DNA from: Klebsormidium nitens
Lineage: Eukaryota; Plantae; Klebsormidiophyceae
Reading direction: 5' to 3'
DNA length: 64,000 bases
NCBI GenBank assembly: GCA_000708835.1
Contig: DF236962.1
Span: forward strand, 62,001 to 126,000
Positions 11,419 to 58,000 of this stretch are shown here, one piece after another; positions within the stretch are counted from its first letter, which is position 1; the number at the start of each line of letters is the position of its first letter. The translations under genes and the position numbers were made by a program. The notes beneath the pieces were generated by a model. It was not told the DNA's origin, ran no database searches, and saw only the letters and a list, made by a program, of their open reading frames with translations.

Positions 11419-13079
11419 ATGGATTCCACCGCTTTTCAGGGGTATCGTCCGACCTGCATCTTTTCTCCTTCACAATGTCGGCGCTTCGTTGAAAGCAATG
11501 TCTGCCAAGAAAGTTGCAGCATGTTGCATGCTCTGAAGTTCGGCTACAGAAGAATTTGCTGGCAAGAACCAGCTGGTATTAAGAGGGGCAGCTTTCAAAG
11601 GCGTCGAAGCTGGCAAACAGGACTTTTTCTCCAACAAAGCAAGCTCGCTCGTTGCAGCTTCCTCAAGTCCACACCCGAGGACTTGGGCCATATAGCAGAC
11701 AGTTCACAGCGCCCAGAAAGTCTACAAAAATTTGGCGCTGGGCTTGGATCGTGGGAGAGTTTGACGTGGCGCCTGGTGGCGCTGTGGGGCTCGGGAGCCA
11801 TTCTTGGGCCGCTTCTCGACGGCCGTCACTCCACCCACAATGTTCTGCATTATGAAAACCCAACGGTAAGCTGCGGCGAGCTTGCACTTTTTATGGATGT
11901 CTCGACTGCTTGAGATCCTATCTTGCAGCGCATTTGCGATTGGTCCGCATGCACTTGGGCTGTATCAATGAGAGGGAAGCCTGAAAGACTACTAGCTTGA
12001 TGGTGCCCTCTCAGAACTTACAGCCTGGTTCATAACAGCAACTCGTTCTCCTTACTGACGCTCTAGATTGACTGCACCTCGGATATGCTGGTGGTCATGT
12101 TTAAGAATGTTAGTATGACTGTATCTCAAACAAGCCGGTGGCTGGCCGTGTTCAAGAATGTTGATGTGGTTCTGGTCGTCCCGTTGCTTGGGCATCTGCA
12201 GCAATCAAAGTCAAGACTGGCCATTCATAAAACGAAAGAGACTACTCACAGTTCATATGATCCAGGTTATCCGCCTGGGCAGCTTCTTCCAACTGGAAAC
12301 CTGCTGGTGGGTGCCCCTGCTCTTCGGAGGCGCTGCGGTCATCCTGGGCATTGGGCATCCCCTACTAGACTCCATCGATCGCAAATCAGAAGCGCTTTCA
12401 CAGCTTGAAGCTACATCACAACTAGCGGGTCTGGAAGGAGGAGCGCCCATTAGAAGTTTTCTAAGAAAGGAGCCTACGGGCGGCTATGCTCCCTCCTGGT
12501 CCTTTGTCTTGATCAGCATCGCCCTCTTTGCGATGCAATACGATCTGAGCGGTGTCTTAGCGGAAAAGGCTAGCAGCGGCGAGCTCTCGTGGACTGCGGT
12601 GAATCTAGCCCTGGCGGGGACTGCAATTGCTCATTGGGCCACCTTTGACCGAACTAGAAGCGGCCTTTTTTGGGCTGCGCTGACGGCGACAGTGGGCCCG
12701 CTCGTGGAGATTGGTCTGATCGAGGGCCTGCACTTGTACCACTACACGCATCCCGACGTCTTTGGCATCCCGCTCTGGATCCCGTGAGTAGCTCGACTCC
12801 CCACTTGACAGACTCTAATTTGTCCAAGCGACTGCCTATTTCTGTGCCTTTGCTCAGAGCACTTCCGTTTGAATCATGAAATATTTCCTACTACTTAGAG
12901 ATCGAAGGTCCTTTGACTGGGAATGACTTCTGGAGCTTCGAATCTTGTGCAATCGAAGAGTTTCTGTCATAAGCCTTCACCCTGATCCAATCAACATTTC
13001 CGATTTCAGGTGGGTCTACTGGTGCGGGGCTCCTGCCGTTGGAAACCTCGGCCGATGCATACAAGCCGGCCTCGACTGA
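11419..13079 (+). CDS. INSIG-like (insulin-induced protein family) multi-pass membrane protein, probable plastid transit peptide
   Basis: Exons 11419-11865, 12266-12783, 13010-13079, phases consistent. GAILGPLLDGRHS, WWVPLLFG, GPLVEIGLI, LYHYTHPD and WVYWCGAPAVGNLGR motifs fit plant/cyanobacterial INSIG-domain proteins. Confidence 0.78.
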
Positions 13080-36155: not shown

Positions 36156-38544
36156 ATGGTGCCATTTGACCTTCACATTGGGGGCCACTCTATCCCGGGG
36201 CAGCAGCTTCTGCCTGGTGTGGACCCAAGCACCCTCACAACTGGCAGCTTGAAGGCATTGCTGGGGCTGAAGCTTCACGTCCCTCCCAGGAATATTGTGC
36301 TCAAGCTGGGGGGGTGGCGGCCCCTTTCCGCAGACGAGTCTGTCCAGGGACTTTATCACCTAGCAGCGGAGACAATTGATCCCGAAACTCGCCTCTTTGA
36401 CCCACCTAAGGTCGTCTTCAATGTGGACACAGGACGCCTCTACTATCGTCAGGGCGAGGGAGCTGCGAAAGTGGAGCTGAACGATGAAGAGGGTCTGGGG
36501 GCCAACTTTGTGCTGGACAAGCTGGTGTTTCACCTGAATGTGAGTGGCGAACAGCATTTGGAGTGTAGGGAAGAGAATCTCAAACAGAACCTCTGAAGTA
36601 GTTTGCCTGAAGAAGACTGCTTTGAGGGTTATAGAGCAAGCAGACGGATTGTACTTACCTTCGCTTGTTAAGACCATGCGTGCGGGCATTGGCTCTATCT
36701 CCTTTGAATGTCCCACTGAGTCTTGGGGGTTCATGATACACAACGGGATCAGAACAAAGTGTTCATGATGCATCAGGAGTTTGGAACCGATCAATGACGC
36801 TAGATTCTCAACTTCGCTAAGCGTCGGAGAACTTTGGGCCTAGGCCAACATTAGTGAGGGCTGGTGGCCATATGGAACGCTGTTCAAGCGTAGGGGATTG
36901 AGTAGGCTTGCTCTGGGGCTGTCCTTGACCCTCTCTTATCTAAGAAGTTTGGCAGGATTTTAGGCGGTTTTCTATGGATTGAAGACATGGCAGTCAGCCA
37001 ACGAGAAGATGCCTCCTATGTATCAAGAGACTGTACAGCGTCGTCATCTTGTATTTCAAGGTCATAAAGTACAAGATTATTATCCTGAAATTGTGACATC
37101 AAAGCTGTTACAATAACAAGGTTCGTTCCTTATTCTCCATTCCGAGATCCTTTCAGCAGTTAATGGAAACCAACCCATGGCTCAGTCTTCTGGTGCCACT
37201 AACGCAGATAATTGAACCGTCAGACTCGCTGTACCCGCACTAGATCCCCACTCACATTCCCCTGGATAAGCCGATCCATTCTGCTCCCTCATAACCGTCA
37301 CCCCGCACCTGTTGCAGGTCAAAGTGCGACCTCTTCCAGAGGAGATTCTACCAGGTGGAGGAACCATCATCGCACTTCTCCTGGGCCTCAACAACGCCGT
37401 TGCGCGCCAGTTCACCTTGATCACGATCACCAAAAGCACCACGATTGGGGACCTGACGTCATACATCTCTCAAGAAGTGGGGGTCTCCCCGAGCGACCTG
37501 CTCCTGCAAACTGGCAACGTCCTCCTCGACAAGCAGAACGCAAGCGACACCTGCTCGCAGGCGGGAGTTCAGGCGGGGTCTGTGATCATTGTCCGATGCC
37601 GCGAGTGGGGGCACATAGTGCTGTACTGCAAGACACTCACCGGCAAAACGCTGATTCTGAGATGCTCCGGTGAAGACACGGTCAGCGAGGTGAAGAAGAA
37701 GATCTACGATCTGGATGGTTATCTCCCAGACCAGCAGCGGCTGATCTTTGGCGGGAAGCAGTTGGAGGATGAGCGGACCCTTCAGGAGTACGGCATCCAG
37801 GACGAGGACACGATCCATGTGGTGCTGCGGCTGCGGGGGGGCATGCTGCACTGCTCGAGTGAGTCTGATTGAACGTTGAGGTCTTTTCAGATTGTAACTT
37901 GTGCTGATAATCTTTTGTAGCAGAAGTTGTAAGAAAGGTGTACCTTCAGGCAACATTTTGTGGTGTCTGGGTGGCCATCTTTCAGGCGACGCGTGTCGTT
38001 TGTTGGAGGTCTACAGACCTTGTCTCAAACTCGGCTGGTATCTGTTCCGATCCTTCCGGACAATCTGGTGACATCGAAGTGTCAAGATAGGGGGATTCAA
38101 CTAATCAAGCAAGTCGGACAGAGCCGGAGTTCGCCGTCAAGTTACCACGCCACTTCACTAAAGGAGCGTCAAGGGGCCAGTAGACGACCCCACTTTTGAT
38201 CAGCGTCAGCTTGCTGCTAAGAAGGCCATTGTGCAGAAATCACTGACAATTGACGCGCAAGTGATTTTGGCTTGGCTCTCTGCGCAGGTGGCCGGATCGA
38301 TCTTCAATCTCTGTGTAACATGACAACGGAACTGGAGGTTGGGATGGTATCCGGCGGAATCTGCATCGGTCATCGGAATGTCCGAGTGGACAGAGCAACG
38401 GAAGCTGGTCAAGTGAGCGCGGCACTGGCGGAGCTTCACAACGAGACACAGAGAAAGGTGCGTGACCTGGAGGCGATGAAACGGGAGATCGAGCAAGCGA
38501 TCGCAACTCTGAAGCAGAATGTTTACCGTGAAGGATCTGCTTGA
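36156..38544 (+). CDS. Multi-UBL/ubiquitin fusion protein, copy 1 (LRLRGG, K48 retained), ~393 aa
   Basis: Exons 36156-36539, 37318-37858, 38288-38544 (phases 0, 1). Ub domain CKTLTGKT...[19 protein letters not shown]...VLRLRGG followed by MLHCSSGRIDL. Confidence 0.85.
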
Positions 38545-39544
38545 GATTTGTACATAGTATCCGTCGTCAGGCGAGCCTTCCGTCATCCAGCCATGCGCTC
38601 TTGTACAGCTAAGCGGGGTCCTGACGTGGTGCACAGTTTGAGACAGTTGTAATAATGTCTTCGACTTTTGGTTAGTGGTAGGTGGTTGTCGAGAGTTCAT
38701 AATGTCCTCTACATGCGCTCTCCATTATATGATCTAACCATTGAGGCTGAAGACGTCTAGCCAAATGTACAACTTTTTTCTGATGTGTATATAGGGCGAC
38801 ATTAACCATCCATACGAGTAGACGTGGGTGAACCTCAAGGCAAATTCTTCTTGTCACATACCCTTACTCTTGCTTCAGTCATTGCAGAAAGTAATGCCGA
38901 AGTTATACATCCAGCTGGTCGCCTCTTGCACATGATACACTGGCTAAAGACGAATCATTCTTGAGGCTGCTTATCGCATATGTGCATGGTGCATGCGGGT
39001 ACTAGATCATGAATGCATCATTGTAAGATATCCTTAACTTGAATGGCGGTTTCGCTAGCTAGCAACTAGTCCGTCGGATGGTGAATTGGGCAAATGCTTG
39101 CTGTTGTTCCAACGCGAGACGCGACTTGGTACTGCTGCATCAACGAGCTTGCACGCTTTTGGATCGTCGGTGCACGCGATATGATTGCAACGGACACAAA
39201 TAAGGTCATGTTATCGAGCGATCGATTTGAGATCATCTGCTCACGCTGCAGCTGACGATTGGCTGCACTAAAGTTCTCACTTGGTACGCCTTAGTTTAAA
39301 AAAGACAGTCTGTTTAAAGACGGAATAAACTTAGTTGTGATACAACTAATATATACGCATCAGCAGCTTCGACGGCCCTGCACTATACTCGTCATGATCT
39401 GGACGACTCTTGCTATATTATTTTCAGTCCTTCAAAGGCCTTTACATATATACAAGCCAAGTTCTTGCCAGCCTGACCTGCAGGCTCTGTACCAGACACG
39501 CGCCTTTCAAAGTTGGCCGATCAGATCCAGCCACGGCGTCCGCT

Positions 39545-42450
39545 TCAAAACATCAACTGCCTGGCAAAGAGCTTCCGTTTCTTTGCCGCCCACTCTCGCA
39601 ATTTTCTCTCGTTTTCTCCTTCGTAAAGAACGGCTAAGGCCTCGCTCAGTCGACGGGCATCCATGGTTCCGTCGACTCGAACAGTTCGCTTGCCGATGCA
39701 GTCTCCTCGCTGCACCATCTTGACCTCGAGCTGCCAGAGAGTCGGCGCTCGCAGATGCTCGTAATCGATCTTGCCACCTGAGGATTGACGTGACAAGCAG
39801 ATCTCGTGATGGTTTTCGGAAATTTGCTTCCCCATTTCATCCACGGATCACATTCCAATTGGGTACGGTGATGTCTGTTCTCCTCAATCTGACTTGGACT
39901 TCCTGAAAAATGATGTGTGTTCTGGCTTTGGAGTCTCCTGCGGTCAGAGCAGGTCAGACTCCTTAGACAGTCGGACATCTGTCGGGACGCCATCTCATGG
40001 TCGAGACAGGATCGTCCAACCGGGTCAAGAAACTGATAAATTTCGATCACTTGCAGAAGGATCATCAACAGACCAAGGAAGAGGAACAATAGCTCCGAAA
40101 GGTTTATCGTGCTCAGCAACCAATCAACATGCGTCTTCGTAGGACCTTCTTTTCCAAGCTTCAAGATCTGACGTCAATACCATCCCCTCGATTTGAATCA
40201 AGACAGGGTCATGCTTCCAACCACAACGGTAGGATTCGGTACCGTTCCCGATCTGAGACGGCTGAGACGGCTATTGACCATGCCTTGCAAAAAGCTTTCT
40301 CCTCGACAATTGAGGAGAATCTAACCAGACGGAAAGGTTTCTGCGAGTATTTCGCTTCCTGAAGAAAAGTTTCAAAATCATTCTGAACTCGACTGCCAAC
40401 TTTCTTTCTCACGAGGCTTCATTTTCTCCAAAAGAGGCTCTTTTGAACTCTTTGAGCCAGGTGCAACAGAGTGACGGTCATCAAAAAACGCTCACTCGAG
40501 CAGTGCAGCATGGCCCCCCGCAGCCGCAGCACCAGGTGGAGCGTGTCTTTGTCCTGAATGCCAACATCCGCCAGGGTGCGCTCATCGTCCAACTGCCTCC
40601 CACCAAAGATGAGCCGCTGCTGGTCAGGGGGGATCCCCTCCACATTCTGGATCATTTCCTTGAGCTCTTCAATGGTCATACTACCCCTGCAAGGTTTCAA
40701 CTCTATTGTCTTCCCCAGCATTGTCTTGCAGAAGAGAACCATCTCCGCTTCATCCCCCTTCCCAACGACCCTCCTGACAGTCAGAAAGGACAGGGACTGA
40801 ATCCCGGCCTGCCAGCAGAACTTGCTCTGGGTTTCGCCGTCCCTTAATCTTCTGCCGTTTGCCAATTGCACTAACTGCTCGCCTGGGGGGATCCCCGACT
40901 CTTTGAAAATCAATGACCTGAAGGCCTCGACTGTCGTGCTTCTGTTGATCGTGGTCAGGCTGATGTGGCGCGTGATGGCATCATTGGGGCCCATGACAAG
41001 GACCACAACTGTCCCTCCTGTCCCGGCCCATGGTGAATACCGCGAGGGGAGGGGTGCAGTGCTCACCTGCGAAGGCAAAGAAAGAACCTGAGCGTTTGAT
41101 AACCGGCGTTTGAATTTTGGGGATACAAAGGTGACTCCTTGCAGAAGTTGCTGTTTGACCCAATGGAACTCAAGATGAGATGCTGCCAAAAGTTTCGAAG
41201 AGAGTCCTATTAGGGACACCTGTGTTAAAAGACATGTTAAATGCTTCTGGGAGACTACGGCTTATCAGTGCACTGTGAGGACACTTCGGAGCAATCACCC
41301 TTGAATAGGACCTGATGTCATTTCTCCAATGTTTCTGTATACATGCAACTGGTTACCGTTGACAAGAAAGGTCCTAGTGCCCATTGCTCAAATAAAGCTC
41401 GTGTTGCAGTCACAAGCGGGTCTGCTGGCTTTGAAGATCCCTCACACTGAGCTCCTGTTGTTCCGTTTGCCATTTGAATGTCAGAAATAGTTGGCAATTC
41501 CTGCGAGCAGCAGCTGTCTTCACGTTTGGACCTTAGGAAGCAGATACTCTCACTGAAAATAATTTGCCAGGGAATCCAGGAGGATGACAAAAGCTCCGAG
41601 CGTCCGGTGCTCCCAACTTCTCCCAGATCCAAAGCAGCAGAAGACAAAAAAGTATCAGCTTGAATTCTACAACAAATCTGTTCAGTCATACTGATACAGT
41701 AATTGGCAACACACATTTAAGGGAACCCGCTGGCCACCATCAGGTGAACCCGCTGAAGTCGACTGTATTGGCACGACACCGTACTTTCATTGCTGCACGT
41801 ATCTAATTACCTGCATTTTGTGGGACTGTGGCCATGCCCAGGACAGTGGGCTTGACTTTTGAAGGGGCAGTCCCCTTGATGTAACAAGTTGCATTCAGAG
41901 AGAGCCACAACGTAACTCAATCAAAGGCGCGTTTGAAGGGGCTATGAGTATCCTTCACAGGAGCTACAGCACACCTACAGCAGGACCCTGATCAACTCTT
42001 GCTTCTCTTTGTAGACTTGAGGCTCACCTTCATATGTAGCTCCAGCTTATCCAGCGCGCATAACTCAGCAAGCCCTTCCTCATCTTTCAGCTCCATGCAG
42101 TCTGCCGCACCTTGCGCCTGCTGATGAAATACACGCTTCATGTCCACATCAAATATGAGCTCCACAAGACGGACGTTAGAGGAATAGTAGTCTGCTCGGC
42201 TTGCTATGTTGTCCTCGCCTTCCCATGCAAATTGCTCAGAATAATGCGGGAAGACATCCTGAATGCACTCATGGTCTGAGAGCGGCCGCCAGCCCCCCAG
42301 CAGGAGCTTCATATCCCTAGAGGAAATGCACAGTTTCACCCCTAGCAATGCTTTCAGAGACCCCGCGGTGAAGAACTTGAGGTCCACACCGGGCAGGACC
42401 TGTTGGCCGAGGATGCATCGGCCCCCAATGCGCAGCTCAAACGCCACCAT
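39545..42450 (-). CDS. Multi-UBL/ubiquitin fusion protein, copy 2 (LRLRGA, K48R, frameshifted tail), ~408 aa
   Basis: Exons 42450-42028, 41066-40496, 39777-39545. GGC>GCC at 40512-40514; the homologous tail [18 protein letters not shown] lies in another frame, ending at 39507. Confidence 0.78.
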
Positions 42451-43719
42451 ATTGTAATACAGTCTACAGGCTTGAATATGGCGGTTTGACAACCACCATA
42501 CTTAATAACACGACTATGCCAAGAAACTATGCCGTTTGGACTGCAGCTAGCTGCAATCTGGGCTGCAAAACCAAGCGCCAAGCAGGCGCCAAGCATTTGG
42601 CCTGTATAATCTGTTATCGGCGTGGGTAACATTGGTTGCGCTGCGGATGATCCCTGGATGATCCCTCAGAGTCACCCACTGTTGCATGTTTGTCCTTGAC
42701 CGTACGATTGACTGGACACAATTTTCGAGTAAGTAATCGACGGCTTGGATCCACCAATGGTGGTGGAGGATCCGCAATCCCGTGAACTCGGCGTGAGCCG
42801 CGGCTTTCTCACATGAGCAATCCCGCAGCTAGGATGTCCAGCTGACAGTGAGAGGGAGAGAGGGAGACTCGTACGTCCACTCGTTGGTTAGCAACGATGA
42901 GCTAGGAGATGAGATCAGATCGCCAGCTAGGCTTCGCAAACAGACCGAGTTAGTCTGCGGCCCATCTGGCGGCTGAAGATCGATGCTGCACAAAGAACGA
43001 CGCACCATCACCGCGCATTACGTCCATGCCCAGCTTATATAATAGCTCAAGTATTAACACAACAAATAACTTGTGGGAGCGGATAAGCGGTTCAAGTTGA
43101 AAATCTGCATACTCTGCATGCGAGAGTCCACTCATGATCAACTCAGAATATGGCCCAATGGTGCGTGGCGGGATGATGGAGTGATGGGGGGATGATTATA
43201 TTTCAAGATTGAGTACGTTGTGGAGTTGCAAGTCATTGGCAGTGCGGAGATAACTTGGATCATCATGCCTTGATATCTCGTGCACGTGGCACGCACTCGG
43301 TTTCGCGAGCGACTTGACAGAAAGCTGCTTGATGAGACGTGACTCGGCTTGCTCAGCAAGCTCGTCTTTCCTGTTTTATGGGCGAATCACAACCCGGCCA
43401 ATCTCGCCGCTTGAAAGCAGTTTGATGCATCCAAGGCCATGGCTGGAGGGCACAGCTACGACAATCCTATTCCATTTTCGGTACGTTATGCCAGTAGTGG
43501 GCCCATGTTAGTCAAACAAGACAATGATGATCTATTCAGTTGAAACAAATGACCCAATTAAAATGTATCAGATGCTCTAATGGCCAGGCTGCAGCTAGCA
43601 ATTTGGACACATTCTTTAATCATACCGTGATCATACCTCCTTGACGACCTTTTCAAATATACAACCAAATCATGCCTGACGTGCGCTGTAGAAGAAAACG
43701 TAGACTAATTTGGAACAAC

Positions 43720-46648
43720 TCAGATCCTAGTCACAACATCCAAGTGCGCTTTCTGCTTCAGCGCTGCGATTGCTTGCTCCAGCTCCCGTTTCTTTGCCTC
43801 CAATTCCCGTATGTTCTCCTCTTCGGTGTGAAGCCCGGATAGGGCCTCGCTCAGTCGGCCCGCATCCGTGGTTCCATCTATTTGAACAGACCGCTTGCCG
43901 ATGCAGACCCCTCGCTGAACCATCTTGACCTCGAGCTGGCTCGTTAGCGCCCGGAGCTGCTCGAGATCAATCCTGCCACCTGAGTAAAACGGTGCGAAGA
44001 TCAGGCCTTTGGAAGGCATAGAGCTTCTAGTTGCACACTGCAAAATACTTGATTTGATTACGGTCCGATCCGTCAAAGTATTTTCTGTCCTTATTGATCG
44101 ACCTTACTCCCTGAAAAAGTTTTGCTTGAAAAGCTTTGCTTAATCTCGCTTGAAGACTGACCCGGTGGTATACACGCTTTGCAGCCGCATACGTATATTT
44201 GTCAAAATGGCGTTATGTACTTGAAAGTACGAGGGACTGTTGAACGGCCGCTCCGGGAAGGATTCACACTCGCCAGGACTCGGATGACAAACAGCAAAAG
44301 TGGGAGGTACATGATGCTCGCATAAGTGCTCCTGAACCTTGAATGAGCAAGAAACCTTGACCCGTAGTAGCTCCAGGCCTCACGTCAGTTTCCCTTCCTA
44401 CATCTAGGAAGAAAAATGGAGAAGTTTGTGTCCGATTCCATGTCCGACATCGGACGGCAGTCAAGGATCCGAGCAATGAATTCTGTCTATGACGAATATT
44501 CGGCTGAGGGACTTAGATTGTCTATAACGAATGTCCTTTCAAGCTTGTTCTGGTAAACGTTGTGCGCAAGAAAGATCACAATTGTGAACGCTTCCTCGAC
44601 TCTGCAATTCTCGATTGACAAGCCTTACTTGACACGTGGTACATGCCTCCTCGCAAGCGCAAGACCAGATGCAGGGTGCTCTCGTCTTGAATGTTGTAGT
44701 CCGCCAGGGTGCGCCCATCCTCCAGCTGCTTTCCCGCAAAGATGAGCCGCTGTTGATCCGGAGGAATGCCCTCCATATCCTGTACAGCTGCCTTGAGCTC
44801 GTCAATGGTCATGCTACTCCGGCAGTGCCTCAAGTATATTGTCTTCCCCGTCAGCGTCTTGCAGAAAAGAAGCATCGTCTCTTCCTTCCCCTTCCCCACG
44901 AACCTTCTGACTATGAGAAAGGACCGCGACTGGATCCCCGCCTGCCAGCAGTACTTGCTCCGGGGGTCATTATCCACTAATCTGCTGCCGTCTGCAAAAT
45001 GCAGTAATTGCTCGTCCAAGGGTATCCCCGTCCTTTGGAAAATCATTGACTTCAGGGCCTCGACCGTCGTGCTTTTGTTGATCGTGCTTAGGCTGACGTG
45101 GTGGGTGATGGCATCGTTGGCGCCCATGACAAGGACCACCACCGTCCCTCCTGTCCCTGCCCATGGCAGGTACCGCGAGGGGAGGGGCGCAACGGTCACC
45201 TGCAACAGCAAGAGTAGAACTTTGCAGGTATGGTCACTTTGGTGGCTGGCCAGGTTTCTGCTGATCTACTTGAAGGACATTCTGCAGCCAACTGTATAGG
45301 ACCACTTTGACAGAATTGCGAGATAGAGATGCTGCAATGTATTTAGAAGGACCGTTAGTATTGAAGACATCTGTAAGGGAACATCTGAACATCTAAAACA
45401 TCTGAACACACCACTTATTCTGGACAAGGTCTGCAGTCACATCCGGAAACCTTCGTCAGACCAGAAGCCATTGTGTCACTTGGTCCAAGGGTACCACATT
45501 TCTGATAACTTGAAAGAGTGGTTGCAGTAGACACTGATTGCAGATTGACAATAAAAGACCTATCTGTTCACTGCTCAAAGAACAGGCGTCACATGGCATT
45601 CACGAGCACTCAAGCTGGCTTTCTAAAGATTCTCCATGTTCGGCTTCTATTGTCCTACTTGCAACAACTCAGTCATCAAAATAACTTGACTGGTCCTTAA
45701 GTCACCCTTAAGTCACTGCACCATGCTTCCCTTTAAGAACATGGTAAGCCAAATTATTGAAAGAAAGAACCTGCCATTAGACTGCAGGAGGGTAGTAAAA
45801 GCTCCGATTGTCAGCTGTTGTTCCCCTTTGTCCTCGACATTGAGCAGTAGAAAAATGGTTTTTCACCATGCGGGTTTCGTAATCCCAATTCTCTCGCAAA
45901 ATGTCCAATCACACTCTCACAATTCGTGGAATCGCAAGAGCACAGGGCTTTGGCAGGCCAACATTGCATCAACCAGCTGAGATTGCCAGCTGCAGATTGG
46001 CCTGTCACCTCTAGTATGGTCCTCATTGCTCGCAAGCTCCATGGTCAGATCTGCTGACGACTGGTCTTGAATCTTAGGGCACCCCCCCTCAAGATATGAC
46101 CGATTCGGAATAATGCAATGGGTCTTCTGGCAAAAAGGCAATTAAAGGGGCCACTTTCAGGGATTAAAGCAGGATACAATCAAACCCCAAGCAATGTTCC
46201 TTCTTTTGGAGGACCTGAGTCTCACCTTTATATGTAGCTCCAGCTCATTCAGCGCACAAAACCCGGCAAGCCCCTCCTCATCTTTCAGCTCCATCTCTGC
46301 CGTACCTTTGTCCTGCTCATAGAACAGGCGCCCGGTGTCCACATCAAAGATGACCTCCGCGGAGCGCAAAAGGTTGGAAGTATACTGTGCTGCTGAATTT
46401 TCTGCACTATCCTCGCCTCCCCATCTGGACTGCTCATAGTACTGCAAATAGAGATCCTGGACACGCTCATCGTCTAAAAGTGGCCGCCAGCCCCCCAGCA
46501 AGAGCCTCATGGTTCTGAAAGAGATGCACAGCTTCTGTCCCAGCAACGCTTTGAAAGCTCCGGCAGTAAGGATGCTGGGGTCCACACCAGGCAGGACCTG
46601 TTGCCCGGGGAGGCATTTGCCCCCCGTGTACAGCTCAAAGGCCACCAT
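43720..46648 (-). CDS. Multi-UBL/ubiquitin fusion protein, copy 3 (LRLRGG, K48 retained), ~417 aa
   Basis: Exons 46648-46226, 45199-44629, 43979-43720. Ub residues 34-76 differ from plant ubiquitin only by K63D; then [14 protein letters not shown]. Confidence 0.88.
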
Positions 46649-47040
46649 GCTGCACGGATTTGCTAAGCTGGCTTTGTTACTCCATCTGTTTCCTGGCCAA
46701 GCAATGGCCCCCTTGTTATGCTCTTCTTGCACCTGGAGTTCAAACTGCAGAACTGCTGAGCAGGAGCCGAGCAGCAGGAGCTGCCCTGCGTAGCAGCATG
46801 ACGTGTCTACAACGGCAACAGGGGAATTGCGTGATCCCTCAAAATCTCAATTCTTGCCCTTTCAAAAGAAACGTCCGATCGTTCGATACGTCATCGACGG
46901 CCCAGTCTGCGCCCCAAGAGCTGAGCAATTTGAACGTCCGATTGAAAACATCGGGATTGGACGGCTAGCACCAGTGGGTTTAGATTCAGAGCACAACGAA
47001 ACCAGACCGCTTCATGATCCTTCAACTTCAAGCCTGCCAG

Positions 47041-47124
47041 GGCCGTCGAGCCAACGGGCGGCGCAACATTTCATTGAAGCCAGCTGGCCATGAATTGCAA
47101 GGCCGGCGAGCAAACGGGCGGCGC
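47041..47124. repeat. Two copies of a 24-bp GC-rich motif at 60-bp spacing, upstream of UBL copy 3
   Basis: ggccgtcgagccaacgggcggcgc (47041) and ggccggcgagcaaacgggcggcgc (47101), 22/24 identical. Confidence 0.7.
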
Positions 47125-47914
47125 CGCTTCCCGCTCTTGCAAGGCCAAATGAAGCTTTCAAGGCGCTCTTCCTGCAAGATCAGCCCCGCTCCGCAATTCC
47201 TGGGGCAGTCGATCCGACAGTTGAATTTCTTCGACTTGGCTCCAGGAGGCTCGCCATACACACTGTCAGACGTTGTAACCACGATGAAACCGTTGCATCC
47301 GATACGTCACAAAGAAGGCACTGGCGTATCGGCCGTACATATTGTTACAGTTTGAGACAGTAACGCCGGTCAGCGATTCTCCGATCTAGTGCCAGAAGTC
47401 ACGCACACAGTCATACTCATGGAGCGATCATCCGACCGATCCGACCAAGAACTAGATGGCTTCAATCACACTTCAATACTATTTCTTTCCATGGCCATTT
47501 TAGTGTACCATTGTATTTGCCTGCGAGAACATTCAGCTGCGAGGGAGGCATAATTAAGTACTCTCAAATGAAACTACTTTTTTACAAACCCGCCAGGTTT
47601 ATTGAGTCTCGTTTCACGCTCATCAGCCCAGGATCCAATTCGTCCATGAAGGCAAAGTGCTGAATCCAGGAGATCAGTAACGCCCCGATGGATCCGCAAT
47701 TTCAAACATTTCTAGACGAAAAGCAGCGAGACTTGTTCTTTCTGGCGACCGACTTGCGCTTCTTTAGGATCTGCTCATCTATACACTGGCACAAATCTGC
47801 TGCAAGCGTTGAAGTAGGACTACTCGATCCTCACTACTGCTTCTCTGCGTATGTTCGCGTGCCCGTTCTGCTTCAGCGCCTCAATCGCCCGTTCCAGCAC
47901 CCGTTTCTTCGCTT

Positions 47915-50835
47915 CTAACTCCCGCACTTTCTCCTCAGTCTCTTGTGAAGCTGCCTGGCCAAGGCCTTGCTCAATCGACGGGCATCCGTGGTTCCATCGA
48001 TCCGTACAGTCCGCTTGCCGATGCAGACTCCTCTTTGAAACATCTTGACCTCAAGCTGGGTCGTCAGCGCTCGCAGTTGCTCGAGATCGATTCTGCCACC
48101 TGTTAACACCAGCGTGATGATCAGACCTTCTGAGAACCTGAAAGCATTGAAATGCACTCGCATCCTCGTGACCGAGTCAATCACGATCGAAATCGTCAAG
48201 ACTTCGTTGTTTCTTTGATCGACTCCCTGAACGAAATCCGGATATTCACGAATCTGACTCGCGGATAACTTAGACACGATACTTACCGAGCTTTTTAGAC
48301 ACCGCACACATTTGCCTGCCAAAACTACGCTTTGCATCAAGAAGCACGTCCGCAGGTGAGGGACTGGTGCTCACCACTTTCGAAGGAACTTCAATACGCC
48401 GATGTTAGAACCAGATTATTGGACTGAGGGTGTGTCGAAAAGCAGTCACTACAGAACTTTGGCAAGACTTGAACCGCAAGGCAGGCTTGGGAAGATTGAG
48501 GCTGGCTACCTTCAAATCAGGTTCCTACATCTGAAGGGAAAACTGAGTACGCTGCCTAGAAAACACATTCGTCGTGTCACTGTTTCCGACGTTAGAAGGC
48601 TGAATTGCACCAGAATTGATTCCGAGGACTACTAGACTATTTGACCCGAGATAAGAGAGACTCTTGACGGAAAGATTCTGCATCGCGCGAACGCTTTTGG
48701 TTCGAATCAACACTAATGAAGCCACAAGAGCTAAACTGAGCGACTCTTTAATCAATGTCGCTTCTAGCTAAGACTGTTTCCAACGGAGATAAAATCTATA
48801 CCGGTGAATGCATGTTCTGACTTGCATGACAGGGCACTCGAGGGACGCCGCTCACTTGAGACGTGGTACATTCCCGCTCGCAGGCGCAGGACCAGATGCA
48901 CGGTGCTCTCGTTTTGGATGTTGTACTCCGCCAAAGTGCGCCCATCCTCCAGCTGCTGCCCCCCCCAGATCAGCCGCTGCTGGTCCGGGGGGATAGTCGT
49001 TTTCTCCTGGATTGCCTTCTTGAGCTCGTCGACGGTCAGGCAATGCTTCAACGTTATCGTCTTCCCCGTCAATGTCTTGCAGAAAATTTGGCCCATTTCC
49101 CCTTCCTTTCCCATCCCGACGCACCTGTCCACTGTGAGAAAGGACTGTGACTGGATCCCCGCCTGCCAGCAGTACGTGTTCCGGGGGTCCCCATCCACTT
49201 TGACTCTACTGCCGTCAGCAAAGAGCAGTAACTGCTCGTCCAAGGGAATACCCGTCTTGTGGAAAATCATCGACTTGAGATCCGCGACTGTCGTGCTTCT
49301 GTTGATCGTGGTTAGGCTGACGTGGCGCGTGATGGCATCCTTGGCGCCTCTGACAAGGACAACCACTGTTCCATTTGTCCCTGCCCATGCGAGAAACCAC
49401 GGAGGGAGGGGCGCGGAGGTCACCTGCAACAGGAAGAGTATAAGCAATTGAAGTTGCTTCCTTGGTTGGCTGGCCAGACAAATTGCGGATTCAAAAAGGT
49501 GACTTTCTGCAGCAATTCACTCTCTGCAAACCTTGACTGAATTGCGACGTAGAGATGCCGCAAATCACGAAGACGAGGTCGCTTCTCGATGATAGCTGTA
49601 AAAGTCATGTAAATGTAAACCACTCATGTCTGGTGCAGTCTAGTCTATTTCTGGAACACCACTGCTTAGAAAGGGAAACCAAGGCAAAACGTCAGATTAT
49701 TGGATGTTCCTGATGTATGCAAGACTGTGAGATTGGTCACATTTTGAACTGTTTGCAGAACAAGAAAAGCCCTCTTTGCACTACATGAGTACTTGCAAAA
49801 GCTTTACACGTGAGTCAGGAGCCCTCTGCTGGTTTCCAAAAGATCCCTCACTTCATGCTTCCACTATTCTACTTGCAACACCTCCTTTCTAGGATTATTG
49901 CATACTAAACCTCAGATGAGATTTGCCGACAATATTGGGCCCTACGAAGAAGATACTTTCATTGATATTGGGTTGCCAGGACAGGCTATCTGAGCGGATT
50001 GCAACAGCCCCTAGCATTCGCTGTCATCCCCGTTGACCTTGATTTTGAGCAGCAAAAGGACTAGTCTTTTCATGTCATGCTGTCAGCATAAATGCGACAC
50101 GTGACCCTGAGCAAGCTTACTCATGTATTGCATGAGTACATGTGATGGCAATGCAGAATTTGACAGGGAACCAGCAGGTCGCTATGTCATCCAGCTAAGG
50201 TTGCCAGATTGGCCTGACTCAGTGCTGCCAGTCACCGCTGCAGAGTCTGCATTGCTTGCATGCTCACAACGTAGGTCTGCTGACCGCTGGTTTTAAACGT
50301 GAGGGCAGCCCCCTTTATGTGACTAACTTTGTACAAGCCACAGCGTAATCTGGTGAAGGTCGGGAGCTAAAGCAGCTTACAAGCAGGTTCTTTTGGCACA
50401 CCTGAGTCTTACCTTCGAATGCAGCTCCAGCGTATCCAGAAAACAAACTGCAGCAAGCTCCTCCTCATCTTTCAGCTCCATTTCTGCCGCTTGCGCCTGC
50501 TGATGAAACAAACGGCACCTGTCCACATCAAAGACAACCTCTGCGGAGCGGGAGAGGAAGAGATCATACTTTATTGCTGACTTCCCTGAGTTAGTCTCAC
50601 ATCCCGGCGTGGTTTGGTCACAAGAGTACTCCACATAGAAATCCTGAACGCGCTCGTGGTCTGACAGCAACCGCCAGCCCCCCAGCAGAAGCTTCATGTC
50701 TTTGGAGGAGATGCAGAGCTTCCTCCCTATCAAAGCTTTCAGAGCCCCTGCGGTGAGGTCCTCGGGGTCGACATCAGGCAGGATCTGTTGCCTGGGGAGG
50801 CATCTTTTCCCATTGCGCAGCTCCAAAGCCACCAT
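47915..50835 (-). CDS. Multi-UBL/ubiquitin fusion protein, copy 4 (LRLRAG, K48Q, frameshifted tail)
   Basis: Exons 50835-50413, 49423-48856, 48099-47915. Ala codon at 48875-48877; 1-nt loss near 47944 leaves [25 protein letters not shown]... in another frame, ending at 47820. Confidence 0.78.
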
Positions 50836-51099
50836 GATACACTCTGCAAGCTTCTTCTCACACCAAGAAGGGCCAAGGAAGGGCCGAACAACAATGCTCA
50901 ACGTTTGATTTATCCTATGGAAATGAAGTAACGAACATGAACAAAAAGAAGCGCCAAGCTTTGCATCCTCTTTGCATGGTAGTAATACTAGACCCCGATG
51001 ACAATCGAGATCCGGATGATCCCTTACCAATGCTGACTCTGCATTCGAAACTGACCGTCCGAATGACTGAATTTTGCAATCCCGTAGATCGGACGGCTT

Positions 51100-53127
51100 C
51101 GATCTACCGCTGCTTGACCGTCCGATCGAATAGCTTGACGGCTGGCACTACTCTTAGAGCCTTAGTACCCACCTCTACCCAGCGCGTACGGTCGGCTGCG
51201 CGGCCGCTGCGCAGAGGAACTGTCATGTGTCGGACTCTGGAGACGGTAAGGCCTATCTGCTCAAAGCAGATTTGCGTTTCACGACAGCAATCTGACAACG
51301 AATTGCTAGGCCGATTGTTTCCCTCGCGGAAGGCAAGGAGGCTGCTCTGCCATGGAGCGCCGCTTTCCGCCACCTTAGCCTGAGTAACTTATATTATTTT
51401 GCTGACATTGCACGCACTTGAGAGTGAAACATGCCCCCCCGCAGGCGCATCCCCGTGCGGTTCGTGTTCTCGTCCTGAACGTTGGAAAGAGCTAGTGCCT
51501 GCCCGTTCTCCCGGTTCTTTCGCCGAAGCCAAGCTGCTGCTTGTCCAAAGACTGGACTTCCAAGCCTAAGATCATCGCCTCGATCTCCTGGACCCTATCC
51601 GTACTGGCAGTACATTGCTTCTCTGGGCCCCTAGACTCCCCCATGACCGGTCGAAAGACCCCTACTCAAGCTTCTCCTGCAGGCTGGCCGCCCCTACTTC
51701 ACTCTGCCACTAGTTGGCCCCGTACTAATAACCAACCAAGTTATCATCGGGGTACTGCAGGAGCAATGTCGACGTCCGTTAGAGGATCCCCGTTTCATTG
51801 AAGGTCTGTTAAAATAGGGCTCCACCTGGTGACAGACGTCGATCGCGAGGTAGCTTCTTCTGTGACGTCACGATTGGAACCCAACAGTAATGCTACGACC
51901 GTCCCTTCGGCTTCGGCCTAGGTTGGTAGCAAACTCTCCGACGGCAGGCGCCACGTGTCGACCTGCAGACGTCGAGTTCCTTGTCGGTTTACTTCAGCTT
52001 GACAAAGAAGACGATTGAATCAGCGCTAGCAAGGTCAAAGCAATGCCAAGATATTGAAGCAGCAGCCCCATTAAGACGGTACCTGGATACCAAACAACGC
52101 CGGCACAGGTTGTGCGGCTTGTAGAGCCCTCTGCTGTTGACTGGCTCTTGGTCATCTGGAGGGGAAGAATTAGATAGCGAAGACGTAGAAGGGAAGAGTA
52201 AGAAGCTTTTGCTTTTGAAGGGGCCCTTTTTGAAGCAGACTGGAAGAAGAGCAAAGACTACTCGAGAGATCGAACCCAGTCGATGCATATGCCCGAACAA
52301 CGAAAAGCTCGTGAAAGAGAAGAAAACAAAGAAGAAAGGAAGAAGGAAAGAAACTCCTCACCACAAAGTGAGGGGGGAAAAGGGATTCAGATCCACAACT
52401 TGATGACTTGACTTCGTCAAAACGGCAGTTCTTCTCGGGTTGACTCTTGAGATTTGGAGAGCCGATCGCGATGAGCGCCGATATTTCGAGTACCATACAG
52501 CTTCTTGCGCGTCAATCAGATTACCCCGGCTTCTACTTTGGACCAAGAAGATACCATCTACAACCATCATAGGCGAGCTGTTCAATTGTTTGATGACGCG
52601 AGCGCAAGCAATCTGAAAGCATCACGTCTTGCGAGCGCATTGCCATGACCTCAGGCCCTCGACAAAGAAGAGGCAATGCGCGAAGGAGAGGCCGTCGCAA
52701 TAAGGCTACAATTCCGAAGGGGCGCTTGGAACCGCCAAAACGCGCATGCTGCTCGTTTCTCACCGGCAAACTGGTACAAAAAAGGACCTCCAAGGCTTTC
52801 GTGCCCCTCTTGCCCTTTGTGTCACAGCTCACAACAACGTCTTTAGTCCACGTCGTACTGCACGATTCTCACCGTGGGAAAGGCTGGCCTTACACGGTTA
52901 TGATCTTTCCCAGATACTTGGCATAGGAATCTTGAACGCCTTTGCTCGGAGAAAGGGTGGCATCCGTCCCTCTCTAGATCATAGCTCGGGAGGAAGGTGG
53001 AGCTTCCAAATCAAAGACTTCAGCAGGTCCCTTGCCGGAGGGGGCGGGGGTCCACCCCGGGCAGCCCCTGCTGCCCGCGGCCATAGATCCAGTTGCCGAT
53101 ATTGATGCACAGTTCAAACGGCAGAAG
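51100..53127 (-). pseudogene. Fifth, disrupted copy of the multi-UBL/ubiquitin fusion gene
   Basis: Exon-1 relic (LPFELCI...GQQGLPGVDP; LLKSLIWKLHLPP; VQDSY; VQYDVD). Exon-2 relic 51962-51418 (VDTWRLPSESLLP*..GTVVALLLGSN; DRVQEIEAMILGLEVQSLDKQQLGFGE; ENGQALALSNVQDENT..MRLRG/MFHS|gt) with stops and frameshifts. Weak exon-3 relic below 51375. Confidence 0.75.
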
Positions 53128-55047: not shown

Positions 55048-58000
55048 CTGGCAAGCCTTCGAGCAGTACCGCACACGTCCGCAGCCGCCGCACTTGTTGA
55101 ATGTCCCTTTTGAAACCTCAACGACATCTTTGGCGCAGTCCTGCAGGAAAGAATACATATGGCAACTTCGTTCATTGCTCAGAGTCATAGAGAGGTTTGG
55201 CGGCTATTTCAGCTTTCCTACTTCAAACTCATGTGCCAGGGCCAGAGACGAACCGTTCTGTTATTTATAAGCTTTATGTGGAAAGCCATCCGACTGGGCA
55301 CAAAATCTTGGCGTCATACGAGGACGAAAACCCGAGCAGGCCATATAGGCAACCCGAAATGAAATCTGGATTCAGCTAGAAGATTGAAAAGCAGCGCGAC
55401 TTTCAACTTGAAACCCGACAACGGAATCTAACTTGCACAGCGTCCTTTTGCAGAAAAGGCATTTCTGGAGAAAAACCTCCATTAAGAAACAGACCCAAAA
55501 GGTCATTCCAAGAGCCTCACCGGATAAGCGCACTCTTCGAGCCCGAATCTCTCGGCCAGCATCGCCCAGACTCGCTTCGCGGTCTCCTGCAGGATCGGCA
55601 GCCACGTGGCCACACCGTGCAGGGTTGGCGGGTAGCAGTCCGCGAGGTAGCTTGAGGCCGCGGCGCGCGTCCGCAGGACGGCCGCGGAGAAGCCGATGCC
55701 ATCCGCGGAGACGACTTCGGACACGAAGCGCTCCTTGAGCGCGGCGTCGCCGGCCGCGCGGTGGAGCGCGCGCCCGAAGATATCCAGCAGGTTTGGAAGA
55801 GCCTCCGTCGTCTCGTGCCACGTGTCGCGCTCGTCTTCGTCCAGCGTCGTGGCGACGATGAGCTCCGAGATGGGCACCCCCTCGATCGGCTTCCGGTCAT
55901 CTTCCGGGTGGACGTAGCACAGCCGGAACTCGCCCCCGCGGAACACGCTCGAGAAGTGGGCGTAAACGCCGCCGAGGCAGGCCACCAAACCCGCGGCCAC
56001 GGGGATCAGGACGTCGGAAACGACTTCGGGCGCCGCAGACAGCGTCTGCAGGACGATCGCCGGGCAGAAGGGGTTGCTGCGGGTGCGGCCCTCGCCGAGC
56101 GCCACACCCAGCGCGACGTCCCCGCCTTCGATCGCGCGAGCGGCCAGCCGCGCGACGCGCATCACAGTCCCCGAGGCCACGAGCGCGGCAGCGCCGCGGT
56201 CGATCTCGTCCGCCATCGCTGCAACGAGCGCCTCATACGCGTCCCCTTCCAGCCGCTCCTCCTCTGGCAGCAATTCGAACGCCTCTAGTCTTGCAACGAG
56301 AGCGGGGGAGTACTCGGGGAGGAAGAGCGCGAGCGACGCCAGGCCCTTCCAAGCCATCCCGGTGTTACTCCCCCCCTTCACTTCGTCCTCTTCGATGGTC
56401 CGGACCGCCAGCTCCACCAGTGCGTACCGGTGCCGATACTTCCGCCCGGGGACCGTTTCGAACGCCGCAAACAGGCACTGCATCAGGTCCTGCCGGTCAT
56501 GCCGATCGAGCGCCCCGTAGTCGCGCGCCGCCCACGCCAACAGCCGCGGGCCCATGTCTTCCAAACCCTCCGCGTAGAACATGTTATACTGGGCGACGCG
56601 GCCGCGCAGTTGCGCGGGCCCGCCGCAGCCGATAAAGACCATGAGGACGGTCAGCGCCTCTTTAGCTTCGAGTGACAGCTGGCAGCGCGCGCCGCGCGGC
56701 AACGCGGCCGTCTCGTTCTCCAGCGCGCGCATCACGACGTCCGGGGCTCCCTCTGCAATGAGGCGCTCGTACTTGTCGACCTGGGCAAAGGCCAGCTCCG
56801 AAGCGACCAAAGCATACAGACTCTTTACGATGAGAGTCTCGAGGGTTTCCGCGTCCCCCTCTCCCGCCTTCAACTTCTTCAGCAGGTCCAAGGCCTCTTG
56901 AAAGGCTGCGCGGCTCTTCTCTTCGAGTTCCTGCTCTTTAAGGCGCTTTTCCGCGGGGTTCGCTTCCGTCAGAGAGCTGATCTGCTTCAGGCGGAACTCC
57001 GTGCTTTGCCAGATCTTTTTGAACGTCCCGATGTTTGCCACGTCCACCTCGAAGAGCGCGTTCACACCGTCGCATATGTTCGTAACAACTGCGGGCGTGA
57101 AGATCTCCCTTCCGACAAATTCATCCGCAAGGAGAGAAATCACCTGCACGAGTGCCATCAGGGCCGTCAAGTGACACCCCGCCTCCGGCGCGTGCGCGGA
57201 CGCGGCCGCGCGCCGCAAGAAGCTGAGGACGTCCGAAACCCAGCACGCCCACTCCGCCGGTCCGACTTGTTCGGAGGCCCATTCCCTGGTCGGAGCACCG
57301 TCCCGAAAGAACGCGGCAACGGCTTCGCAGACGTTTTGGACCAGGACAATCGAAATCAGGAGGCGTAGCGTATTAGAGGGCGCGGGATTGCGAAATGGGA
57401 TGAGCTTGAGGAGGGCGGGGAGCAGCCCGCTGTGCAGAGCTTCGGTTGTGAACTCGGGTGTGTGCTCGAAGAGGTGTCTGGTGAGGTCGAAGGCTAGCTG
57501 CAAAACCTCCCACGGGCGATATTTTCGGGTTCCTGCTAAGTAGTTCTTGTGGGGGGTCGCACCATCGAGGAATCGGCTATTCTCTTGAGGGAAGACGTCT
57601 TCGAAAAACTCGGCTACCAACGGGGCGATGTCGGACGCGTCGAACTGCAAAGGACCAAGGTAAGCTGTGGCAAAATTTACAAGCCGTGACGTGAAAGCTA
57701 TGGTTGAGTGCGTTTCTTTTCGACCTTCCACAGAATGCCATCATGACTTTCGCGAAAGAACGAGGCAGAACAAGGGTTCTGTGTTGGATATGATGCGGTA
57801 AGAGATTCCCGAGATCTTTGACTTCGCTCTCTTTGTTTCGCAGTATCAGCACCACAGTGTTTGACGCCTTGGACTTTTCAAATGTCTGTGGCCTCGAAGA
57901 GCGTGTCTCGCAAAGATTTTGAACCACTGTGAGGACTGACAGCTTCGTGGACAGAGTTCAAGAGTTGACGAGATCGAGGTAGAAGAGAGTTCGAAAGAGA

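Follow-up and report, generated by a model that had tools for sequence, protein, structure and literature searches.

Organisation of the gene array

The window analysed here, a stretch of 64,000 nt from Klebsormidium nitens (assembly GCA_000708835.1, contig DF236962.1, positions 62,001-126,000, forward strand), carries an array of unusual ubiquitin-fusion genes. The open reading frame (ORF) listing together with frame scans revealed four three-exon paralogs, called here c1 to c4, between 36.1 and 50.9 kb, the plus strand encoding c1 and the minus strand c2-c4 (Table 1). Exon phases are identical in all four copies, as judged from splice sites read off the DNA, and the spliced models correspond letter for letter to annotated K. 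nitens proteins of 393, 408, 417 and 391 aa. A fifth copy, recovered by tblastn with the c3 domains and by a frame scan, persists as a relic. The initial annotation of this locus, made from the sequence alone, described four paralogs and one relic with a common three-exon layout, and all of them are present where it placed them. The family is already in public annotation, under generic names that hide a distinct and unstudied architecture.

In each gene, exon 1 encodes an N-terminal domain, exon 2 encodes a second ubiquitin-like (UBL) domain, UBL2, followed by a domain derived from ubiquitin, and exon 3 encodes a C-terminal tail. The Ser codon at the end of exon 2 is split by its donor site and exon 3 reads SGRIDLEQL, so that the motif MxHxSSG[RK]ID, announced for the region after the di-Gly site, is indeed found at the exon 2/exon 3 junction. 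Copies c1 (K48 kept, full tail) and c3 are of the intact type, and c3 has, of the copies, the highest representation in RNA contigs.

Table 1. Positions of the genes, domains and fragments in the window, with the two degenerate copies from other assemblies
Feature	Position	Strand	Exons or evidence	Remarks
c1	36156..38544	+	exons 36156-36539, 37318-37858, 38288-38544	393 aa, P0008; model identical to annotated protein
c2	39545..42450	-	exons 42450-42028, 41066-40496, 39777-39545	408 aa, P0007, 'ubiquitin C'; degenerate: LRLRGA, K48R, L8M, tail frameshifted after ...AAKKR
c3	43720..46648	-	exons 46648-46226, 45199-44629, 43979-43720	417 aa, P0006, 'ubiquitin family protein'
c3 N-terminal domain, residues 1-141	46226..46648	-	AF2, VIA-align, hhalign	probable UBL fold
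c3 linker and UBL2, residues 142-250	44873..45199	-	hhalign, phmmer, AF2	
c3 ubiquitin-derived domain, residues 251-327, plus Met328	44642..44872	-	PF00240, PDB matches	ends LRLRGG
c3 suspected conversion tract	44688..44793	-	RNA depth, loose ends, dS	44793 is a depth-bin edge
c3 junction LRLRGG / MYHVS(S)	44629..44664	-	codon map	predicted deubiquitinase cut site; exon 2 donor 44629/44628
c3 exon 3 tail, SGRIDLEQL... to stop	43720..43979	-	AF2	
c4	47915..50835	-	exons 50835-50413, 49423-48856, 48099-47915	391 aa, P0001, 'hypothetical protein KFL_000130185'; degenerate: LRLRAG, K48Q, tail frameshifted between 47957 and 47936 (elsewhere than in c2)
Relic fifth copy	51430..53076	-	tblastn with c3 domains, frame scan	
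Relic, N-domain fragment	53076-53026	-	tblastn	
Relic, UBL2 fragment	51905-51780	-	tblastn	in-frame stop
Relic, ubiquitin end	51519-51430	-	tblastn	...MRLRGGM(FH)
L005b				degenerate: LLGG then VYY, K48Q, in-frame stop in tail
L004				degenerate: PLGAA then MMSH, K48 kept, no tail break seen

A probable and two firm ubiquitin-type domains, only the last of which resembles ubiquitin closely

The near-canonical ubiquitin attributed to exon 2 is the best established part of these proteins. Pfam detects one ubiquitin-family domain in each of c1-c4 (E 1e-29 to 4e-32) and none in exon 1 or 3; in c3, PF00240 covers residues 253-324 of P0006 with E 4e-32 and 110 bits, versus a cut-off of 25.4. When this domain was compared with solved structures, the best 60 of 60 matches were ubiquitin (E 5e-32 for mono-ubiquitin). 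It displays a one-residue insertion, residues 34-76 are nearly identical to ubiquitin, and in c3 L8, R42, I44, K48, H68, V70, R72, L73 and R74 are all kept, K29, K33 and K63 being replaced. Judged by its sequence, the last domain goes back to ubiquitin, and neither ISG15 nor FAT10 is its source. The ISG15-like identity proposed initially thus fails if it is understood as descent. Nor is the last domain a RUB, because R72 is kept; Arg72 is found in 9 of the 10 copies tabulated, the other one, the degenerate L004, having Pro.

UBL2 is a diverged ubiquitin-family fold, in agreement with the second UBL that had been assigned to exon 2. In hhalign it matches the family's ubiquitin domain with 95% probability (E 2.8e-8); phmmer gives a weak sequence match with ubiquitin chains, and the AlphaFold2 (AF2) confidence (predicted local distance difference test, pLDDT) is 62-84. 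Its end, ...VGKGKEETM, contains no RGG and no Gly-Gly cut site.

The N-terminal domain is more elusive. It has no sequence match to ubiquitin, no Pfam match (sub-threshold noise at E up to 1) and no PDB sequence match, and it ends with ...LELHIK, again without RGG. Its residues 26-61 are aligned by hhalign, in the correct register, with the helix and third-strand region of UBL2 (34%), and residues 103-141 with residues 40-75 of ubiquitin (10%). Modelled alone by AF2, it adopts a beta-beta-alpha-beta-beta order followed by a disordered insertion, with a pLDDT of 50. Foldseek found no match to this model at E up to 0.001. In an exhaustive structural comparison by VIA-align, UBLs occupied all of the top 50 rows (Z 4.3-5.6, rmsd 2.1-2.7 Å over 61-66 residues), among them ISG15, HOIL-1L, OASL, Dsk2, parkin and FAT10, and the Atlas look-alikes also belong mostly to the ubiquitin clan. 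This domain is a probable beta-grasp fold into which about 30-50 residues are inserted, a model-based assignment of moderate confidence. The divergent UBL-like region initially attributed to exon 1 is thus consistent with the structural matches, but with a low-confidence model and such Z values it stands as probable only. Both leading domains, N-domain and UBL2, are either 20-35% identical to ubiquitin or without detectable similarity to it.

A junction predicted to be exposed and a constrained tail

The full-length AF2 model of c3 shows no confident packing between domains (mean pLDDT 59, predicted template modelling score 0.35). UBL2 and the ubiquitin domain are its best modelled parts, ten-residue means of pLDDT being mostly 62-86, and residues 322-341 around LRLRGG-MYH fall below 50; the junction is thus predicted to be flexible and exposed. 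The tail was initially described as helical. AF2 does predict a long helix of 46 residues (371-416), but this is preceded by a beta-hairpin (residues 344-366).

What the tail is related to was approached in several ways. A degraded fourth ubiquitin repeat, which hairpin and helix might suggest to the eye, is rejected, hhalign against the ubiquitin and UBL2 profiles giving 0.1%. Pfam at E up to 1 returned sub-threshold noise, and the Atlas provided no usable feature match, its structural matches being only generic long helices. With phmmer, the tail retrieved designer pentatricopeptide repeat (PPR) proteins with a summed E of 2e-12 and no significant single stretch. Over about 22-32 residues, weak similarities to each of many identical repeats add up to this score; we treated a PPR fragment as a chance result, and the resemblance is probably just that, although the tail may have originated from a captured PPR fragment. 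The stretch concerned is residues 350-381 of P0006 (window 43828-43923, minus strand).

Tail dN/dS among paralogs is 0.08-0.39, the lowest value being that of the c3-c4 pair, and about 40% identity is kept in the most distant relatives. With such values the 90-aa tail is too conserved for a throw-away propeptide, and the notion of a disposable C-terminal extension does not hold. Spliced RNA contigs join exon 2 to SGRIDL, so that a ubiquitin unit with intact LRLRGG and an unrelated tail are carried by one mRNA.

Cleavage after Gly-Gly would give the tail a new N-terminus. In yeast, a free N-terminal Met followed by a hydrophobic residue can act as a degradation signal. The Met-X-His start of a released tail would match the form of the amino-terminal Cu(II)/Ni(II)-binding (ATCUN) site; with the invariant His3 and the definition of the motif as its basis, we mention this, like the degradation signal, as a lead only. 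The ATCUN site is defined as X-Z-His at the amino terminus (PMC10515390), and the N-terminal peptide of human Ctr1 is an example (PMC9117721).

The family is transcribed and spliced

Contigs of four public runs from four studies were aligned to positions 43600-49550; these runs are labelled 'RNA?' and behave as RNA. The c3 introns 43980-44628 and 45200-46225 and the c4 intron 48100-48855, all with GT..AG ends on the minus strand, are skipped exactly in contigs of all four studies. A single contig of 1609 nt spans the three c3 exons, and contigs of 1.6-1.7 kb cover the three c4 exons in the four runs. These data bear out the gene models of c3 and c4, and the family is transcribed and spliced. 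Depth over c4 is about one tenth of that over c3, contig depth being a crude measure which cannot give expression levels. Over exon 3 the c4 contigs show zero differences from the genome, which means that the frameshift in the c4 tail is genuine and no artefact of assembly. As for c1, a fraction of 0.48-0.62 of the sampled words is present in twenty RNA-type runs from seven studies, the exon share of the queried stretch being 0.47; these word fractions suggest a spliced c1 mRNA.

Sequence of the c3 introns is also present in low-depth RNA contigs (43950-44656 and 45172-46251), at about 1-5% of the exon depth, which reflects either unspliced precursor or some intron retention.

Distribution is limited to Klebsormidium-type algae

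A profile built from the four tails, run against 1.84 billion representative proteins, gave 13 matches (E up to 0.001). Family members account for the ten best, namely c1, c2 and exon-3 ORFs from other assemblies; the remaining three, the weakest, are long matches made up of several stretches and were left outside the family count. A wider tail profile, run against 5.8 billion clusters, retrieved 11 ORFs, all of them short, from a few assemblies of Logan, JGI and ENA, and word-indexed searches with the N-domain and UBL2 returned only Klebsormidium proteins, including a 418-aa transcript of K. subtile. No family member appeared in scans of metagenome_contigs and viral_contigs. Among the billions of proteins searched, tail and N-domain are confined to Klebsormidium-type algae, in line with the lineage-specific character suspected from the start. 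In the literature, we found no report on these gene identifiers or on this architecture, and no tandem-UBL modifier reported in plants or algae.

The contigs behind the matched ORFs provided ten further gene copies with the three-exon layout. L003 and L005 come from a Klebsormidium-like sample. A distant clade (L001, L004, L006, L007 and L008), from two JGI metagenomes and another run, has identities to c3 of 31-40% (N-domain), about 37% (UBL2) and about 40% (tail); outside the conserved junction and K48, identity in this most distant clade drops to 31-60%, depending on the domain. In some intact copies even the ubiquitin domain is only about 60% canonical.

The two JGI metagenomes, 3300060284 and 3300060285, hold three intact copies and one degenerate copy on separate contigs (L001, L004, L006 and L007). 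Several copies being thus present in the distant alga or algae, multi-copy state and turnover appear as traits of the family and not as peculiarities of K. nitens. In L003 (1-4700, compared with window 36156-42450) the tail-to-tail, convergent order of c1 and its neighbour is kept. There the gene in the position of c2 is intact, with LRLRGG-MFH and a full tail, and the decay of c2 therefore looks recent and species-specific.

Cut site, K48 and tail tend to be lost together

The set comprises 14 copies. Ten are intact: c1, c3, the K. subtile copy, L001, both copies of L003, L005a, L006, L007 and L008. LRLRGG and K48 are kept in all ten, across four clades, and in all ten Gly-Gly is directly followed by Met, then Tyr, Leu or Phe, then His. 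The longest conserved string, H(L/V)V(L/V)RLRGG-M-x-H, is common to nine of them, L008 having LILRLRGG. The Gly-Gly or Arg-Gly-Gly end is lost in all four degenerate copies (c2, c4, L005b and L004; Table 1). K48 is gone from three of these, the tail is frameshifted or stopped in three (c2, c4 and L005b), and the M-x-H register has disappeared from two (L005b and L004).

A maximum-likelihood tree covering ten rows displays four groups, three of them well supported; the group of c2, c3, c4 and K. subtile (93/96) is internally unresolved. For L004 and for L005b the sister is an intact copy, c2 and c4 are grouped with c3 and K. subtile, and each degenerate copy has a longer branch than its intact neighbour. 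As the four degenerate copies carry different mutations, decay must have occurred in at least three independent events, and the relic at 51.4-53.1 kb is its end state. The birth-and-death evolution proposed initially is thus visible both in the window and on the tree.

Pairwise dN/dS is 0.3-0.46 for the whole protein and below 0.7 in every domain, the two leading UBL domains having values of 0.23-0.65. During most of their history, purifying selection has therefore acted on every part. That Gly-Gly, K48 and an unbroken tail go missing in a coupled way indicates that these features serve one function. At the sequence level, the pairing of Gly-Gly with K48 fits a conjugated, chain-competent unit, and that of Gly-Gly with a tail starting with Met-X-His fits a released tail with its own role.

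These observations bear on one further explanation, that the genes are a decaying polyubiquitin remnant without present function. Their origin from ubiquitin is clear, and a relic and several frameshifted copies do exist. Yet intact copies are found in at least four clades with dN/dS of about 0.3 in every domain, spliced expression is robust in four studies, and tail and N-domain are conserved though neither is ubiquitin sequence. This explanation is largely refuted and we regard it as very improbable.

A proposed two-product precursor

We propose instead that the genes encode a ubiquitin-fusion precursor, which is cut after Gly-Gly into an N-extended ubiquitin of 303-327 aa and a separate tail protein, and we give this reading a probability of about 0.5. 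The intact chain would consist of two diverged UBLs without a cut site between them, the ubiquitin-derived domain, a flexible junction and the tail of about 90 residues. Its third unit would offer the surfaces recognized by deubiquitinases and by ubiquitin E1 (L8, I44, H68, V70, R42, R72 and LRLRGG), and K48 as well. General deubiquitinases would cut after Gly-Gly, as they do in natural linear ubiquitin fusions generally, and two products would result. One would be an N-extended ubiquitin with a free LRLRGG, of 303 aa from c1 or 327 aa from c3, in keeping with the unit of about 300 aa and the end predicted for these two copies at the outset; ubiquitin E1 could activate it, and on targets it would form a bulky tag, a mimic of an uncleavable linear chain. 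The other would be the free tail of about 90 aa, with the unacetylated N-terminus Met-(Tyr/Leu/Phe)-His. A copy deprived of its cut site would lose the coupled features too and decay.

Linear ubiquitin fusions are, as Bachmair, Finley and Varshavsky reportedly found in 1986, cut in vivo whatever follows Gly76, except Pro. Cellular deubiquitinases are expected to cut where LRLRGG-Met lies exposed, N-terminally extended or tagged ubiquitin is still activated and conjugated, and changes of Gly75 or Gly76 impair both cleavage and conjugation. Since the residues that we know to matter for recognition are all kept in the intact copies and the junction is predicted to be exposed, cleavage after Gly-Gly is to be expected here, and on sequence evidence we find it rather probable. 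Conjugation of the N-extended product in the manner of ISG15 or FAT10 would be a further step, and a doubtful one. The precursor probably yields two functional products; we favour this over a modifier with a disposable extension, and both product roles may hold. For the stress or anti-pathogen role suggested at the outset we found no evidence, in an analysis that did not cover expression under stress.

The boldest form of the proposal is also an unlikely one. It would make the N-extended product a triple beta-grasp modifier of about 300 aa, the first multi-domain modifier of ubiquitin type outside vertebrates, with an ATCUN-form N-terminus of the tail freed by the same cut. Attached en bloc through its own LRLRGG, the triple unit would be a ready-made linear-chain mimic resistant to deubiquitinases. 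The ATCUN-type site could exist only after cleavage and would echo the ubiquitin-NiSOD fusions of marine algae.

Alternatively, as in ubiquitin-eL40, ubiquitin-eS31 or the fusions of ubiquitin with NiSOD in marine algae, ubiquitin could be the cleavable carrier and the 90-residue tail the payload, provided with a defined unacetylated N-terminus; the triple-UBL part would be a non-conjugated chaperone or by-product. Outside the ubiquitin domain, constraint is strongest on the tail (c3-c4 dN/dS 0.08; about 40% identity up to the deepest clade), M-[YLF]-H is invariant in the 10 intact copies with its register gone in 2 of the 4 copies lacking the cut site, and loss of that site accompanies a frameshifted or stopped tail in 3 of these 4. 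Ubiquitin fusions to unrelated partners are, in addition, common in algae (PMC6332867). What such a carrier does not explain is the purifying selection on two extra UBLs (dN/dS 0.23-0.65) and the joint loss of K48 and Gly-Gly, and its payload would be a tail without recognisable family or function. For us it is an improbable account.

Suspected gene conversion in c3 and the possibility of an uncleaved protein

Part of the c3 ubiquitin domain may have a history of its own. In the bin 44595-44793, RNA depth rises to 6,877, versus about 700 alongside. Very abundant canonical-ubiquitin RNA contigs match this part of c3 without listed difference, with loose ends at 44688 and 44691. Past the tract these contigs continue as CAG AAG GAG TC, corresponding to the Q-K-E-S of canonical ubiquitin, where c3 has Q-D-E-S (codon 62/63). 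Moreover, dS between c2 and c3 is 1.57 in this segment and 0.39-0.70 in the others. We suspect that canonical polyubiquitin sequence was copied into c3 by gene conversion, up to codon 62 and therefore upstream of LRLRGG. In a perfectly conserved stretch with codon bias, an exact match of a few dozen bases could also be a coincidence. A canonical polyubiquitin gene, which would permit a direct test of conversion, was not found within the 64-kb window. The contrast drawn in the initial annotation, of a terminal ubiquitin conserved while the outer UBLs diverged, is a pattern that we also see, but the near-canonical state of c3 may partly reflect conversion.

Conversion also enters the remaining alternative, an uncleaved multi-UBL adaptor whose three ubiquitin folds would dock on the proteasome or on ubiquitin receptors and whose coiled-coil tail would oligomerise or bind cargo, LRLRGG being kept by descent or by conversion from polyubiquitin and not by use. 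Such conversion could maintain ubiquitin-like sequence, as the exact transcript match and the dS outlier of c3 suggest. The open frames kept by c2 and c4 (dN/dS 0.46), the transcription and splicing of c4, and the frequency of never-cleaved internal UBLs (OASL and parkin, both among the structural matches of the N-domain) also speak for it. However, the suspected tract stops short of LRLRGG. LRLRGG-M-x-H is found in 10 of 10 intact copies from four clades, including those with a ubiquitin domain only about 60% canonical; the junction is predicted to be flexible and exposed, where cutting by deubiquitinases is generally expected; and the copies without Gly-Gly sit on longer branches, as decay predicts. 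We consider an adaptor unlikely.

Several points nevertheless weigh against the two-product precursor. Its support comes from sequence and RNA. The model of the N-domain is poor (pLDDT 50) and its Z values, below 6, fall in a range that the tool itself calls common. The 14 copies behind the family statistics represent perhaps three to five organisms. The degenerate copies still have dN/dS below 1 and c4 is expressed, so that the protein may also be useful uncleaved. Finally, part of the ubiquitin-like perfection of c3 may have been imposed by gene conversion and not by selection on c3.

Comparison with known ubiquitin-type systems

Algal ubiquitin fusions to many partners are documented; in some, as in Bigelowiella, several non-identical ubiquitin units precede the partner (PMC6332867). 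Like these fusions and like ubiquitin-eL40 and ubiquitin-eS31, the Klebsormidium genes join a ubiquitin ending with LRLRGG in frame to an unrelated C-terminal polypeptide, and cleavage by deubiquitinases is expected. They differ by a partner that is neither ribosomal nor of any known family, by the two conserved, diverged and uncleavable UBLs that precede the ubiquitin, and by their restriction to Klebsormidium-type algae. In Pfam scans at E up to 1, neither the whole protein nor the tail gave a ribosomal family (eL40/eS31), and there was no such match among PDB sequences.

ISG15 and FAT10 share with this family several beta-grasp domains in one chain (here two firm ones and the probable N-domain) and the absence of a cut site between domains. 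Their end in (L)RLRGG or GG has a counterpart in the LRLRGG of c1, c3 and eight relatives, though not of c2 and c4, which the predicted cut would expose. Both mimic linear di-ubiquitin, and ISG15 loses the C-terminal extension with which it is synthesized. The Klebsormidium proteins are distinct in having three domains instead of two, the last one derived from ubiquitin, and in that their extension is a conserved 90-residue domain, folded according to the model. To our knowledge, tandem-UBL modifiers such as ISG15 and FAT10 are confined to vertebrates, and we know of no E1, E2 or E3 dedicated to the Klebsormidium family.

With polyubiquitin and the plant polyubiquitin-like or ubiquitin-RUB genes, the family has in common ubiquitin folds arranged head to tail in one frame and, as in polyubiquitin, Met after Gly-Gly; exchange of sequence with canonical ubiquitin genes is suspected. 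Unlike in polyubiquitin, only the last unit has a cut site and introns separate the parts. RUB/NEDD8 has Ala72, which excludes ubiquitin E1, where the last Klebsormidium unit keeps R72. RAD23, ubiquilin/DSK2, OASL and NUB1, structural neighbours of the N-domain, also contain uncleaved UBLs, which serve there as docking modules. These proteins lack a terminal LRLRGG with an extension, and the Klebsormidium proteins are without UBA, STI1 or other partner domain; for UBA in particular, Pfam scans at E up to 1 were negative. The statement that the family is not polyubiquitin, a ubiquitin-ribosomal fusion, RUB or RAD23 is therefore upheld by the missing internal RGG, the missing ribosomal and UBA matches in Pfam, and R72.

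The kind of precursor, ubiquitin fusion or UBL, is thus already known; new are the tail partner, the pair of conserved UBLs at the front, and the lineage. Klebsormidium is a land-dwelling streptophyte (charophyte) alga, and land plants arose from streptophyte algae. If the protein is cut and conjugated, a chain-like, pre-assembled tag would have been invented independently here, and the function of such tags could be studied in a tractable system. Even without conjugation, ten intact and four decaying copies constitute a natural experiment on Gly-Gly, K48, Met-X-His and tail, whose co-travelling points to what the precursor needs to work. The tail merits as much attention as the modifier unit.

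Surroundings of the array

The neighbours of the array include an INSIG-like membrane protein (12158-12787, plus strand), a protein kinase (14758-16599, minus strand) and an alpha-amylase fragment (31772-32653, plus strand). No E1, E2, E3 or deubiquitinase is encoded among the other long ORFs of the window (INSIG-like, protein kinase, amylase fragment and unknowns). In L004, too, a kinase is found upstream of the divergent copy, a case of possible synteny. Opposite exon 2, antisense open frames run over c3 (44766-45299, plus strand, 177 aa) and c4 (48804-49451, plus strand, 215 aa); they show no sign of being genes and probably result from codon composition on the sense strand. An open frame of 742 aa (55503-57731, minus strand), without Pfam family, lies where G+C in the window is highest (0.61).

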